A stretch of DNA of 64,000 nt from Octopus sinensis (GCF_006345805.1 NC_042999.1:134912001-134976000); one strand, 5' to 3'. Positions 16,063-53,390 are shown, counted from the stretch's first letter. The notes: generated by a model not told the origin, from the sequence alone. A program made the numbers and translations.

Positions 16063-16330
16063 CACGTGTGGAAAAGCTAAAGTTAGAAAATAAAACAGGA
16101 AATAATAGCTCAAAGGAAAGACATAAATAGCGTGAGAAAAACAAAACAAAAGCGAGAAATCCACATTTGGCTCATAAACTATGTCAAATTTATGGCCACT
16201 CTCTAAAACAAGAACTATTGTTTTGAAATTCGCTTCTTCCTAAACTTATTCACGTGTTTCGCACGCGACAAAAGCAAACATAATTTGCAATTGATAATAA
16301 AATAAGCAATAAATAAATTAATAAATAAGA
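16063..16330 (+). promoter_or_regulatory. Recurrent motif module, copy A
   Basis: CACGTG 16063, GCGTGAGAAAA 16130, CTATGTCA, GAACTATTGTTT 16212, TTCACGTGTTTC 16249, then an AATAAATAAATT tract. Confidence 0.5.
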
Positions 16331-16364
16331 AGAGAGACTAAAGGAAAGGTAAAATCGAGTTCCA

Positions 16365-16442
16365 TATAAATATCATCGATTTTTACAGAAACATCATTCG
16401 AGAAACGAACTTTGACTTGAAACAAATTAATCAGAGGTGAGT
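16365..16442 (+). promoter_or_regulatory. Predicted core promoter and non-coding first exon of tyrosinase copy 2
   Basis: TATAAATA at 16365; Inr-like TCATTC with its A at 16396, 31 nt downstream; consensus donor GAG|GTGAGT at 16437. Coding exon 1 has an acceptor 9 nt before the ATG, which implies an upstream exon. Confidence 0.55.
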
Positions 16443-18177
16443 GAAGAACAGTTTCTAGTTATATTTCCTTTACAGTGATTCTTTTTTTTTTTTGGTGGGG
16501 TGGGGAGACAAAGGTCGTTTCGCTTTTTGCTTTTTTGTTGTTTTTGTTTTTACCTGGAAGCTTATAATTTTCATCAATCAGAATCATAGTTTACACACTG
16601 TAGTGAAGTGAACCGCTATGAACGGAGAACTCTAGTTTGAAACATGGTATCTACGTGACATTTCTAGAAACTTAAGAGAAATTGAAATAACAAACGACTT
16701 ACATCTAAATTTTACAATGAAGAAATTATCTTTCTCTCTTCTTCGTGGATAGGCAAGAACTCAGAGCATTAGATTTCACAATTTTTGCGTTAAGTCAAAC
16801 TTAACGATTTACTTCTTTTTGAGACATCTAACCGTTGACCAGTGATGACAGTATACGAATAGCCAGTCCATTGACTGAACATCTGCAATTTCCTTGTTTC
16901 GTTGCATCCTCTCTCTCTATATATATATGTGTGTGTGTGTATGTGTGTGTGTATGTGCGCGCGCCTGAAATTTACAAGCAGAATTTAATAGCTTGATGCG
17001 TGCATGTTTTTAAATTGTTGACTATTCTGGTTGAGGCCCAATTGACAACGCAAGGCTATAGAATTGCAAACATCAAGAGACATTAAATACCTTCAGTTCC
17101 TTGATTGAATTGGTCTTGTACCATAACCATTATCTTTTAAGTATCACAATGAAATAAATTCCAGTGGTATGAGGTCCTGTGAACGCGTAAAAAATTCTTC
17201 TGAACCTCTTCGTCCAAACCACCTCCCCGGCAAAATCGCATCAAGATAGGTCCTTACATTACTATGTTAGTGTGGGGACACTCGCCGTCTTACTGGAAAT
17301 GGAATTTCACACTTTCAAAATACTTCTGAATGCTTGGCATGACAAATTGTTGCAGCAAGTTCAAGTAAATTGGACCACTCACAGTACCATAAAACAAAAA
17401 TGGTCAAATTAATCATACTATAAACCCTAATAAATTAACCTGCTTTTCTATAAAATGCAGATTCTCAGATCCGCAGTAAGTGCAATCGTGACACTTAATT
17501 ACGCCAATTAATTTAAATGTAACATCATCACTCAGGACAATTTTGTAGGAAAGTGTGCATCTTCTACGCATCTTGGCAAGTGTCACTCACAAAACAACAC
17601 TTTTCGGCCCGAATCGGCTTCAATGAGAGCATGACAGCGCTTCAAAATGCGATGAACACTCGGTTTTGAAATTTCTATTGAACTCTAGCAATACGTTTTG
17701 AGTACACTATCGTGCTTTGTATCCGCGGTCTTCTGGAACGTTTCTTGTGGACATTCTGAGCAGTTTTATCTGCTTCAGACTTATCTCTAATTCGAGGGAC
17801 AGTACATCGTGTTTGAAACTCTCTACTAAACTGTCTTTGCATATTGGATTGAGTTTTACAAACTTTCAGTTGCACTTTAGAGTAAATTTCCTTTTTTCAA
17901 GGCTTAGTCTGGTTCTTTTCATAATTTCAAAGCTTTAAATCTCAAAAGAAATAAAATTAGGTGAGCTTTCAGGTGTTGAAGTGTGTATACATTTTGAGAC
18001 ATGCTACAAGTGTATATATATATATATATATAATATATATATATATATATATATATATATATATATATATATATATATATATATATATATATATATATAT
18101 ATATATATATATATATATATATACAACATATGTGTGTATCTATTTATACTTCTAATCTTTATTTGCAGAGAACCATA

Positions 18178-18522
18178 ATGAGGTATTTAATCTTGATTCT
18201 AACGCTGACCGTGACCGTTGTTTGTGCAGATGATTTTAACATAATAAAATCATTCACAAAATGTTACAAGAATTTCCAAAACAATGCTTTTGAATCGAAC
18301 AAGAGGCAGGAGTGGCAGAAATACTGTTTGGATAACAACCCTTATGTTCGGAAACGTTTTGGAGGTTGGGTTAACCAAATTCCAAACATTCATGACTATA
18401 ATAATATGGGAGATGGTCCAAAGCCTATTAGGTCAAAGCAGGTCAGAAAGGAATATAGAATGCTCACTACAAAAGAGAGAAACGATTTCCATCACGCCAT
18501 TAATCTATTAAAACAAGATACG
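18178..18522 (+). CDS. Tyrosinase-like gene copy 2, coding exon 1
   Basis: Acceptor AG at 18167-18168, ATG at 18178, donor gtaagt at 18523; translation identical to copy 1. Confidence 0.92.
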
Positions 18523-50479: not shown

Positions 50480-51360
50480 ACCTTCATCATTACTGTTAAT
50501 GCCCTTTTTCCGCACTACACTCCGTGGTATTTTCACTGTTACTTCCATATTAACGAAGATCTGTACAAACTAAGTTGTGTCAATTGCATGAACACCTCTG
50601 GGTTGTGCTATTAGCTCTATACAGGTATATATGACCAACTCAACCCTGATTTACAATGCGGATGGAACCTTTGTGTTGGCAGTTAGTATCTAACCATGAT
50701 CATTCTGTTAAAAGCCATATTTTAATGAGTTGAACGGACATTGTCAACTCACAGTGTCTTGACACCAAACTCTACTTTGTATGTGGACACGTTCAACATA
50801 CTTCTCCAAGGAACCAACTGAAGGAGACAATTTGCTGCATTCTACTATGTTTGCCAAACAGATCCCACCTTAGGTCAAGAATGATTTTTGTATGGCTAAT
50901 CTTTGAGCTGTACATTAAGTATACAAAGCTGACCTCTGCATCCTTCAGCTTTTGTGCGAAGCCTAAGCTCTGTGTCAGTTTCATCACTGCTGAGGCAATG
51001 TTCTGGTCTAACTTATGTACAGCTAAAACAATTTGGTTTCGCCTACTGCAGAGAATCTTCTAACATTACTCAGTCAATGCGTAGAAAATCACTAACACTG
51101 CTGCATTGTCTCACAGCCAGCGCACTGTAGATTGGCTCAGTCTTCAGACTGGCATACATCACGGTGTGTTTTGCTGAACACGTCGTAGTATGCGACAGCC
51201 AGAAGCATGACACCTGTATCTGAAGTGAAGAAGACCATCCGTGCGTTGGAAAAGCACTGTCATGCAACTGCTGCTAAACAGATCATCAAAGTATCAGCTT
51301 CCTCTTCAAACTGCTTATTGTGGATGCTTTGTGAGTAGCCTAATGCTGATGTGATCACTA
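50480..51360 (-). mobile_element. Degenerate XPG/FEN1-like nuclease ORF of probable Academ(X)-type DNA transposon
   Basis: Minus-strand EEEADTLMICLAAVA...FFTSDTGVMLLAV (EEADT...S.DTDV..L), VIFYALTE*C (FHALTGCD-like) and LDLRWDLFGK; heavily frameshifted. Confidence 0.5.
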
Positions 51361-52623
51361 ACTCTTGGTAGTTTCTGTTAGTTCTTTGAGTATTGCTGGT
51401 GCAAAAAACTCCGTTAAGGTGAAAAGCCGTTTTGATAGTAGTAGTAGTAGTAGTAGTAGTAGTAGTAGTAGTAGTAGTAGTAGTAGTAGTAGTAGTAGTA
51501 GTAGTAGTAGTAGTAGTAGTAACTGTAAACTGGCATAAAATGTAATATTTTTAAATAAGCCAAAAAATATTTTTGTAATGGTATTCACTTGAAAATAATT
51601 TCTAAAAAATTAAAATATTGTCTGTTTAAAGAAAGCTAAAATATAAATACTGTAAAAATAACTTGTATTTTTGAAATCACATACACTTAAAAATATTTTT
51701 CAAATGATTAAAATATTGTGTTTAATAGAAACATTTACTGTAAAAACAACTCGTATGTTTTCGTTGGCAAGTTAAAATCACTAAAACTTTCGCCCAGGTC
51801 GTGAAGTTTGCCTTCAAAATACAGAAGGCATTGATCATAATGTCTGTAATCGAAACGTTAGAATCTCTTCCCTTTCAGGGTTATGTTATTTTCGGAGTAT
51901 TTTCCCATTATGCACCGTTTTGAGTACTTATAAATACCCTAAAAAAACCATATCTCAGGAATCCGTGGTCCAATTTATACGAAACTTGTTTTATTCCGTT
52001 TGTATTCACACTTCAGAGGTCCCTTAATTCACAGTATTTTCCCATTATGTGCCAGTATAGCTGTATTAAATGATAGACAAGAAAGCAATCAGAAAAGTTG
52101 AGTAGTATATAGATTGGCTTGATTCTAACTTTAGCACAGGTATAAATAAAAGACTCTTGTAACAGAATAATCCTTCTTTCCTCGGCAATATCAGAGATGT
52201 AACATCCTTCTTATTCTGTCTTTACAAATATAGCATCTCCCTCTCTCAAAATAGCCTCTCTCACTTTCTCTCTTTCTTGTTCTCTCTCTCTCTCTCTCTC
52301 TATATATATATATATATATATATATATATCGTGCCTCCATCGGCCACTAGAAAACTATTAACTTGTTATCGAAGACAAATCTCGACTGAGCCTTAATTCA
52401 CTGTTACTATCTTCCCAGACAACTAATAGTACGCCTTCTACAACAACAATAACAACAACAACAATCAGCGATTCTCTAACAGACCAATTCATCGCAGTTG
52501 TAATAATTCATAACTGTTAATTAAATGCTATGTTAAATACGAACTATGCCTTCCGTCAATTTATTTCAAGAATCCTGAAATTACTATGTCGTCATTCGCT
52601 ACCCACCTTCAAACTTATTACCT

Positions 52624-52853
52624 ATTTCTTTATTGCCCACAAGGGGCTAAACACAGAGGGGACAAACAAGGACAGACATAGGTATTAAGTCGATTACATC
52701 GACCCCAGTGCGTAACTGGTACTTAATTAATCGACCCTGAAAAGATGAAAGGAAAAGTCGACCTCGGCGGAATTTGAACTCAGAACGTAACGGCAGAGGA
52801 AATACGGCTAAGCATTTCGCCCGGCGTGCTAACGTTTCTGCCAGCTCTCCGCC
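52624..52853 (-). mobile_element. SINE family A, full-length
   Basis: Reverse complement of the 1822-2046 unit. Confidence 0.85.
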
Positions 52854-53056
52854 TACCTCCACCAAACTTATTACCAATGTATATTATCAATTACACGGTT
52901 ACAATTGGTTACAAAATGCTTTATCTCTTAAGTTCAAATTGCAGCGTGGTCGAAGCCAAGAATTTAGTGTGAAATTCATGAGAAATGTCAGTTATCTGTA
53001 CTTCCTCAATTAGAAATAGAAAACAGCGCGGGGTTTATTAATATTCAACGGATAAG

Positions 53057-53390
53057 CACGTGTTCGGTCATGTGATGACAATATTTTTGAAGTCACACAC
53101 TAACTCACAAGATATAGAAAAGCTAACTTGTAAAGTAAGATAAATCAAAAATCAAAAAAAAAAAAGAAGATATAAATCATACAAAAGACAGTGAGATATT
53201 GAGAAAGAAAAAAAGTTGAATATCAACTGTTAACTCATAAAATGATTTCTTTTGGCTGATAGCAATAATTTTAAAGAAAAGAACTATTGTTTTCTTTGCA
53301 TGTTTTGTTTTGTTTTCCTATGCCTGTTCACGTGATTCACAAGGAATAACGGAAAATATGTAAAAATGTTTTTTACATATAACGGTGAGA
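53057..53390 (+). repeat. Recurrent motif module, copy F
   Basis: CACGTGTTCGGTCATGTGATGAC 53057, GTGAGA 53191, TCAACTGTTAAC, ATTTCTTTTGGCTGAT, GAACTATTGTTT 53281, TTCACGTGATTC 53327. Confidence 0.6.

Follow-up and report, generated by a model that had tools for sequence, protein, structure and literature searches.

The 64,000-nt window analyzed here (Octopus sinensis chromosome C3:134912001-134976000, + strand) covers the distal end of a tandem cluster in which five tyrosinase genes, T-a to T-e, share one strand, and carries six copies, A to F, of a short motif module. This module is probably the promoter of a subfamily of the tandem tyrosinases, and the five copies B-F are probably gene-less partial duplicates of it that decay in a near-neutral manner, most likely as relics. 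In a preliminary description of the window the module had been proposed as a repeated cis-regulatory unit. That proposal stands for A and for two further gene-linked copies, Z and A0, which are placed directly upstream of a TATA box, an initiator (Inr) and a 5' untranslated exon, but B-F have lost the core-promoter features.

The module itself was reproduced as first described, with all six copies on the + strand and in the same motif order. GCGTGAGAAAA is exact at 16130 (A), 34055 (B), 40543 (C) and 49285 (E), and is replaced by the variants ATGTGAGAAAA at 44688 in D and GTGAGATATTGAGAAAG at 53191/53200 in F. The distances from GTGAGA to the E-box were again 119, 137, 110, 137, 125 and 138 bp in A-F, and the upstream CACGTGT was verified in A (16063), C (40416) and F (53057), where it forms part of a conserved distal block, CACGTGTTYGG-CA..TGA, that is present too in the T-c promoter. 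The sequence TCACGTGWTT was found five times in the window against 0.27 expected, every time within a module and on the + strand. Copy C reads TACGTGATT in its place and its E-box core is therefore mutated. The intervals between successive copies from B to F are 6.5, 4.1, 4.6 and 3.9 kb.

The homology among the copies was highly significant. Pairwise blastn comparisons among B-F gave E values of 5e-11 to 3e-7, and Smith-Waterman z scores for the 170-bp core were between 7.5 and 29 over all 21 pairs. A non-circular test was provided by an nhmmer profile built from the T-c and T-e promoters only, without the use of B-F, which recovered E (3.7e-18), B (1.1e-13), F (1.2e-9), C (4.9e-7) and D (1.1e-3); its matches in the window were all on the + strand, and none besides had an E value below 1. 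The homologous unit was longer than originally reported, extending from about -170 to +330 around GTGAGA, with an ancestral unit of ~500 bp.

A covariance/hidden Markov model (HMM) built from the six copies A-F, called R1, detected exactly eight copies in the 164 kb around the locus, all of them on the + strand and within ~75 kb. The two extra copies were Z, at C3:134890023 (L008:8023-8259), heading T-c, and A0, at C3:134911098, heading T-d; the latter is a duplicate of A situated ~900 bp before the window start. With R1 the module was absent from the 50 kb downstream of the window, and no significant match was obtained in the 20 kb upstream of the older paralogues T-a and T-b or in the 10 kb upstream of the paralogues at C2:87.99 Mb and C3:25.02 Mb. 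About 15 kb upstream of the T-b large exon, three TTCACGTG boxes were observed within 180 bp (L031:4400-4580, C3:134830834-134831014), which is suggestive only; the context of the last one, TTTCTATTCAAATTTATTCACGTGA, resembles the proximal part of the module (R1 E = 0.8) and is directly followed by a fragment of long interspersed element (LINE) reverse transcriptase.

The architecture of the gene-linked copies was defined by the order of the motifs: the distal E-box pair (CACGTGTTTGG-CA..TGA), GCGTGAGAAAA, TCAAC..GTTGAC, ATTTCTTTTGGTTGAT, GAACTATTGTTT and TTCACGTG(A/T)TTC, where the block downstream of TCAAC..GTTGAC reads TTTGGTT, then ATTGTTT, then TCACGTGWTT. The sequence TATAAATA follows the proximal E-box after ~115 bp, and the Inr TCATTC lies 31 bp later. 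The predicted non-coding exon 1 has ~41 nt and ends in AG/GTGAGT, the predicted intron 1 measures 0.6-1.7 kb, and exon 2 begins 9 nt before the ATG. In copy A these elements are located as follows:

16046-16456, + strand: copy A, the functional-looking promoter of T-e
16063: distal E-box of A
16130: GCGTGAGAAAA
16218: ATTGTTT
16249-16260: TTCACGTGTTTC
16365-16372: TATAAATA
16394-16399: Inr TCATTC
~16396-16436: predicted exon 1, with the donor AG/GTGAGT at 16436/16437

Copies Z and A are 66% identical over 453 bp, from the distal E-box region through the donor. The alignment includes CTATAAATA/ATATAAATA, the Inr-like ATCATTCGAGAAAC and the donor AG/GTGAGTGAAGAA, and stops 16 nt past the donor, the rest of intron 1 being unalignable. 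The exon-2 acceptor tttgcag/AGAAC is conserved in T-c and T-e. A TATA box ~30 bp before the Inr, an exon 1 with a GT donor and a matching acceptor were all found in A, and all are conserved in T-c. The homology of Z and A across the motif block, TATA box, Inr and donor, together with the conserved exon-2 acceptor, argues that the module constitutes the predicted proximal promoter and non-coding first exon of a young subfamily of secreted (alpha-type) tyrosinases (T-c, T-d and T-e).

The genes of the cluster were located by a protein search of the genome (2.72 Gb, 13,516 contigs). All five are secreted tyrosinases on the + strand:

C3:134,755,406, + strand: T-a, upstream of the window, large exon 65% identical to that of T-e
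C3:134,846,434, + strand: T-b, upstream of the window, 68% identical in the large exon
C3:134,893,250, + strand: T-c, upstream of the window, 93% identical in the large exon
C3:134,915,461, + strand: T-d, window 1241-6188, 98% identical in the large exon
C3:134,932,380, + strand: T-e, window 18169-23126, the reference (100%)
18169-18522, 19457-19570, ~20380-21990 and ~22911-23126, + strand: T-e coding exons, mapped with the family HMM
1241-1585, 2524-2637, 3461-5058 and 5976-6188, + strand: T-d exons, in the first copy of a duplication

The first coding exon of T-e has the acceptor ttgcag/AG (boundary 18167/8) and an ATG at 18178, and the tyrosinase domain was confirmed by Pfam (PF00264, E 5e-17). 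T-d and T-e are held by the two halves of a 17-kb tandem segmental duplication, in which 1-11658 (+) matches 17001-28619 at 97-99%. The large exon of T-d is frameshifted near 4222-4252, its open reading frame (ORF) being broken into 3302-4255 and 4222-5061, which points either to recent pseudogenization of T-d or to a fault in the assembly.

The identity between T-c and T-e is 93% in the large exon and, at the protein level, only 37% in exon 2. The segments compared were window 18178-18522 with L008:9030-9362 for exon 2, and 20380-21735 with C3:134893250-134894605 for the large exon; the first ~200 bp of intron 2 are 78% identical. This mosaic fits a homogenization of the 3' half by gene conversion, as published for Argonauta argo, where the passages on octopod tyrosinase clusters describe tandem duplication and gene conversion (bioRxiv 10.1101/2021.11.08.467834). 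The 5' regions of the cluster genes retain an older divergence while the coding regions are homogenized, and promoter conservation among the gene-linked copies is therefore meaningful.

Regarding the factors that may act on the module, seven copies (Z, A0, A, B, D, E and F) contain TCACGTG, and copy C has TACGTGA with a broken core. The T flank of the E-box is retained in seven of the eight copies, and TCACGTGA occurs in Z, F and Argonauta. The sequence thus carries the flank of the MITF/TFE type (CACGTG or CATGTG with a 5' T and/or a 3' A), and MITF/TFE factors may bind the E-boxes of the module. USF, TFE, MYC/MAX or bHLH-PAS (bHLH, basic helix-loop-helix) factors would be equally possible binders; USF and bHLH-PAS factors are as compatible because GCGTG and the TACGTG of copy C resemble their cores. 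In the gene-linked copies, a bHLH-leucine zipper factor of the MITF/TFE or USF type would probably bind the T-flanked CACGTG boxes and, joined by further factors at GCGTGAGAAAA and at the Sox-like ATTGTT, would direct tissue-specific transcription of the tyrosinases. MITF is known to prefer CACGTG with a 5' T and/or 3' A flank (PMC6672050), and Mitf activates the tyrosinase promoter of the bivalve Pteria penguin, for which two E-boxes are needed (PMC8173187). The vertebrate MITF/M-box system and the Pteria penguin Tyr gene are similar to the module in having E-boxes upstream of a tyrosinase TATA promoter, and the proximal box of the module is T-flanked. However, the M-box and the bivalve sites have a CATGTG core and the octopus module has CACGTG, and the octopus genes encode secreted alpha-type tyrosinases whereas the vertebrate system involves a melanosomal enzyme.

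The five copies without a gene are distributed along the second half of the window:

34008-34345, + strand: copy B, with GCGTGAGAAAA at 34055, TCAACAGTTGAC, TTCACGTGTTTC at 34192-34203 and an AT-rich block
40393-40701, + strand: copy C, with the distal E-box CACGTGTTTGGCCATCTGA at 40416, GCGTGAGAAAA at 40543, ATTTCTTTTGGTTGAT, AAACTATTGTTT and a mutated proximal E-box, GTACGTGATTC, at 40654
44628-45320, + strand: copy D, with ATGTGAGAAAA at 44688, GTCACGTGTTTC at 44825 and TATAAG at 44900, without a donor
49226-50385, + strand: copy E, with GCGTGAGAAAA at 49285 and ATCACGTGTTTT at 49410, TATA lost, without a conserved donor
53032-53380, + strand: copy F, with the distal E-box CACGTGTTCGGTCATGTGA at 53057, GTGAGATATTGAGAAAG at 53191, TCAACTGTTAAC, ATTTCTTTTGGCTGAT, GAACTATTGTTT and TTCACGTGATTC at 53327

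The copies vary in the parts that they kept: C and F retain the core and the distal E-box block, and B, D and E retain the core with a decayed TATA/exon-1 part. Copy B has lost its TATA box, shows exon 1 as a degenerate trace, GTTCCTCAAC, without a donor, and has its upstream part replaced by a local 65-bp tandem repeat (33869-33933/33965-34031, 92.5% identical) at the place of the distal E-box region of other copies. The recognizable homology of C ends near 40700, shortly before a miniature inverted-repeat transposable element (MITE)-like element of ~480 bp (40740-41219), ~80 bp downstream of the E-box of C; its terminal inverted repeat (TIR) arms, 40740-40782 and 41177-41219, have 43 nt and are 88% complementary. 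Just upstream of the span of D there is a degenerate distal box, TACGTGTTGAT, at 44600, and the homology of D to E reaches ~45320. In E the stretch homologous to D is split by a short interspersed element (SINE) at 49658-50064, so that 45009-45294 matches 50075-50357 at 67%. The homology of F ends at ~53380. C and F are physically truncated 40-70 bp past the E-box, before the position equivalent to the transcription start site (TSS). Among B-F a TATA-like box is kept only in D and the exon-1 donor in none of the five.

These copies display the features of duplicates of a gene 5' end, in that they are significantly homologous to the parent promoter, point the same way and adjoin the parent cluster. 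In the maximum-likelihood tree, which was star-like and supported only the pair D+E (90/93), the distance from the centre was 0.31 for Z and 0.35 for A vs 0.51-0.58 for B-F, whose branches are ~1.6 times longer. D and E are homologous over ~750 bp (44628-45320 vs 49226-50385, the SINE set aside), with 61-66% identity per 100 columns. Identity in this pair was 65.6% in the module core, 67.9% in the TATA/exon-1 equivalent and 67.4% in the non-module downstream stretch, a comparison of core and flank that is limited to D and E since the core alone survives in B, C and F. Such uniform identity is the pattern expected of a partial duplicate that decays neutrally; the preliminary description had itself set it out beforehand as counter-evidence, and its proposal that motif conservation with free drift of the spacers is a sign of selection was accordingly weakened.

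Among the options initially considered, descent as relics from an old tandem gene cluster accounts best for the origin of B-F, with five same-strand tyrosinase genes and the module in the promoters of the last three. B-F would have arisen by partial tandem duplication of the 5' end of a gene, or by duplication of the whole unit followed by loss of the gene body. Deprived of core-promoter and splice-donor features, they would diverge at about the neutral rate, and might possibly still bind the same factors. Additionally, in the ~1.4 kb downstream of D (45000-46360) and E (50100-51530), only the first ~300 bp are homologous between the two stretches, and no other match was present among the 40 scored of 1,279 and 1,758 genome candidates, respectively. 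These stretches may be unique non-transposon DNA of an old duplication unit.

Remains of the gene bodies were searched for behind B-F. No coding relic of a tyrosinase was detected in 28620-64000 by tblastn up to E 100, and the tyrosinase-family HMM, applied to all ORFs of 15 aa or more, gave only a poly-Thr low-complexity match (51263-51550). When the entire T-e unit was compared with 28.6-64 kb by sensitive blastn, no gene-body relic emerged, and a profile of exon 2 and intron 2 found none after B-F. One candidate relic of intron 2, T-e 18528-18584 against 44339-44396 (E 0.004, z 5.0), was not reproduced by this profile and was therefore treated as a chance match. It lies within a stretch at 44331-44397, 290 bp upstream of D, with ~70% identity over 66 nt to the exon-2/intron-2 junction block of T-e/T-c. 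Protein-coding exons common to the B-F units (4-6.5 kb) were not found either, the shared parts being SINE, LINE, DNA-transposon and microsatellite sequences only.

The possibility that B-F are alternative promoters with first exons, spliced in the manner of protocadherin or UGT1A genes to shared exons of a gene beyond the window, was also considered. The uniform polarity and the regular kb-scale spacing would suit it, as would the derivation of each copy from a promoter and a non-coding first exon, and protocadherin and UGT1A arrays likewise consist of promoter and first-exon units in one orientation. B-F, however, have no conserved donors and no constant exons were identified: the Z/A donor AG/GTGAGTGAAGAA is absent from all five, four lack a TATA box, and two end before the TSS equivalent. 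Moreover, there is no downstream tyrosinase body on C3 and no module in the next 50 kb, other acceptor genes not having been searched for. An array of alternative promoters, as suggested at first, is thus very unlikely.

The same promoter was looked for in another genus. The Argonauta hians orthologue, P0001, is 76% identical, and the module was not detected in its locus by R1 or by the nhmmer profile. The promoter was recognized there by motif order and position, after removal of a SINE. Four of the five CACGTG sites of the 28.7-kb A. hians locus fall 2.4-2.9 kb upstream of the ATG, and the region 2.2-2.9 kb upstream of the ATG contains GCGTGAGAAAA, TTTTCACGTGATCC, a TATA box, TTTGAGAAACGA and a donor. 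The order begins with AATCAGAGATTAGCGTGAGAA, followed by a 254-bp SINE flanked by duplicated TAGCGTGAGAA, and continues as AAATT ... CACGTGATGA ... TTTTCACGTGATCC ... AAAGGAAAGAATTTGAC ... TATATATAG ... TTTGAGAAACGA ... AAAG/GTTGGT. The SINE-like element (L033:7261-7536), of which the 28.7-kb locus holds at least four full-length copies, sits inside the GCGTGAGAA motif of the promoter, and owing to the 11-bp target-site duplication (TSD) TAGCGTGAGAA this motif survives on both sides of it.

Downstream of the last annotated tyrosinase gene of A. hians, at a distance of 8-9 kb, a second, partial module was observed on two contigs (L033:27771-27935 and L035:24552-24660). Both contigs have the distal E-box CACGTGTTTGGTCACCTGA, and ATGTGAGAAAAT comes ~120 bp later on L033; on L035 a SINE array starts before the ATGTGAGAAAAT position. 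Tandem SINE arrays follow on both contigs, with different insertion points, and no gene was called beyond this module in the remaining flank of ~1 kb (L033) or 1.7 kb (L035). The Smith-Waterman z score was 5.6 for the first A. hians segment (Arg1) against A, and for the second (Arg2) it was 6.1 against C, 5.0 against Z and 4.3 against F, with control segments reaching up to 3.9; C, Z and F are exactly the copies retaining the distal block. The promoter module is likely conserved across the genera, as judged by these motifs and their order.

In another explanation, duplicated promoters gave rise in B-F to functional cis-regulatory elements, acting as enhancers, shadow enhancers, a locus-control-like array or promoters of non-coding transcripts, in which selection would keep the factor-binding block. 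The 170-bp core survives in all five copies, with z scores of 7.5-21 among B-F pairs, and the TATA/exon-1 part is mostly decayed. This survival, the T flank kept in most E-boxes, the failure of four kinds of search (tblastn, HMM, blastn and the exon-2/intron-2 profile) to recover the rest of the ancestral unit, and the partial module beyond the last Argonauta gene would all be in keeping with function. Shuffling of the alignment columns gave p = 0.029 for the best window of 8 columns, but the run-length and autocorrelation tests of clustering were not significant. The D/E core is not above its non-module flank in identity, the branches of B-F exceed those of the gene-linked copies, the CACGTG core is lost in C, and GCGTGAGA is altered in F and in D. 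Such a functional role was judged rather unlikely. Less likely again is the proposal that B-F are conserved promoter-derived enhancers, or an array serving as a factor-binding "sink", at the distal edge of the cluster and shared with Argonauta, which would co-regulate the cluster via factors binding the E-box and GCGTGAGAAAA.

Several points nevertheless weigh against the main reading, of a tyrosinase promoter with B-F as decaying relics. The CpG-containing block ACGTG.TT is invariant in all eight copies, in a region with a CpG observed/expected ratio of 0.69, and five consecutive copies keep only a promoter-sized piece, the 1.7-kb coding part having left no trace. Should B-F date back to the split of Z and A, a core under purely neutral decay would be expected to have vanished as well, given that intron 1 can no longer be aligned between Z and A; the star-like tree gives no order of age among the copies. 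The similarity to Argonauta is statistically modest, and the second A. hians module could make a gene-less copy ancient and conserved. The transcription factor, like the TSS and exon 1, is itself a prediction from sequence.

The origin of the copies by transposition was examined in the whole genome with two motif-pair patterns, GTGAGAAAAN{100,130}CACGTGWTT and TTTCTTTTGGN{44,74}ACGTGWTT, the matches elsewhere being judged from 80 nt of sequence each. Of the 27 matches to the first pattern, six belonged to this locus and the remaining 21 were visibly unrelated. With the second pattern there were 16 matches vs 18 for the reversed control, and those resembling the module were C, D and F only. BLAST of the genome with copy B returned no further copy. 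No TIR, long terminal repeat (LTR), TSD, poly-A tail or ORF belonging to the module was seen, only unrelated flanking elements such as the MITE after C. Since no module-like copy was found outside the locus, a transposon family was rejected, although a few very degenerate copies elsewhere are possible because the scans are pattern-based.

The module might still be a low-copy mobile element, or a part of one, whose repeated insertion provided the tyrosinase promoter by accident. Such an origin would agree with the high density of transposable elements in the region and with the small size of the copies (200-700 bp). Against it stand the confinement of the copies to a 75-kb locus, their single orientation without transposon termini or coding capacity, homology ends that vary from copy to copy, and the orthologous gene of another genus preceded by the same architecture. 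The module is almost certainly not such an element, and the initial view that it is no ordinary transposon was borne out by the genome-wide scans and the lack of TIRs and TSDs. The strand argument offered for that view (all copies on the + strand, a chance of 1/32) was correct as to the orientation, which is + in eight of eight, but has little weight because tandem duplication gives the same orientation by default.

Besides the tyrosinase genes and the module, the window contains the following elements:

12145-14900: LTR-retrotransposon-like gag/protease/integrase frame between T-d and copy A, with a weak Retrotrans_gag match and an rve match of E 6e-11
28620-64000: transposon-rich stretch without recognizable genes that houses B-F and also carries SINEs of several families and microsatellites
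29525-31583 and 38192-39003: mariner/pogo-type fragments
33150-33614, 47907-48644 and 58675-59469: LINE reverse transcriptase fragments

No known RNA families were found in the window with Rfam.

Compared with known systems, the cluster resembles the octopod secreted-tyrosinase cluster of the Argonauta argo paper in its gene conversion, seen in octopus in the contrast between the large exon and exon 2 of T-c and T-e. The tyrosinase passages of that paper deal with coding regions only, and neither a promoter module nor five gene-less copies are mentioned in them. Keyword searches of the open literature found no cephalopod tyrosinase promoter. Promoter-only pseudogene fragments at the edges of gene arrays share with B-F the parental orientation, the adjacency, a homology restricted to the 5' part, the lost signals, the insertions of transposable elements and the longer branches. 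B-F differ from such fragments in that five of them follow one another, none has a coding remnant and all have the same 170-bp core, a pattern more regular than random decay would predict.

These results give a concrete promoter architecture for the secreted tyrosinases of cephalopods, enzymes related to pigmentation, ink, cuticle or egg-case chemistry, in which GCGTGAGAAAA and a T-flanked CACGTG are shared by paralogues and, with less certainty, by a second genus. They also describe the evolution of a cluster whose coding regions were homogenized while its 5' divergence is older, with a trail of promoter-only duplicates at its distal end. Activity of B-F would make them a clean case, in nature, of the reuse of promoters as enhancers; without it, they would represent ordinary genome archaeology.

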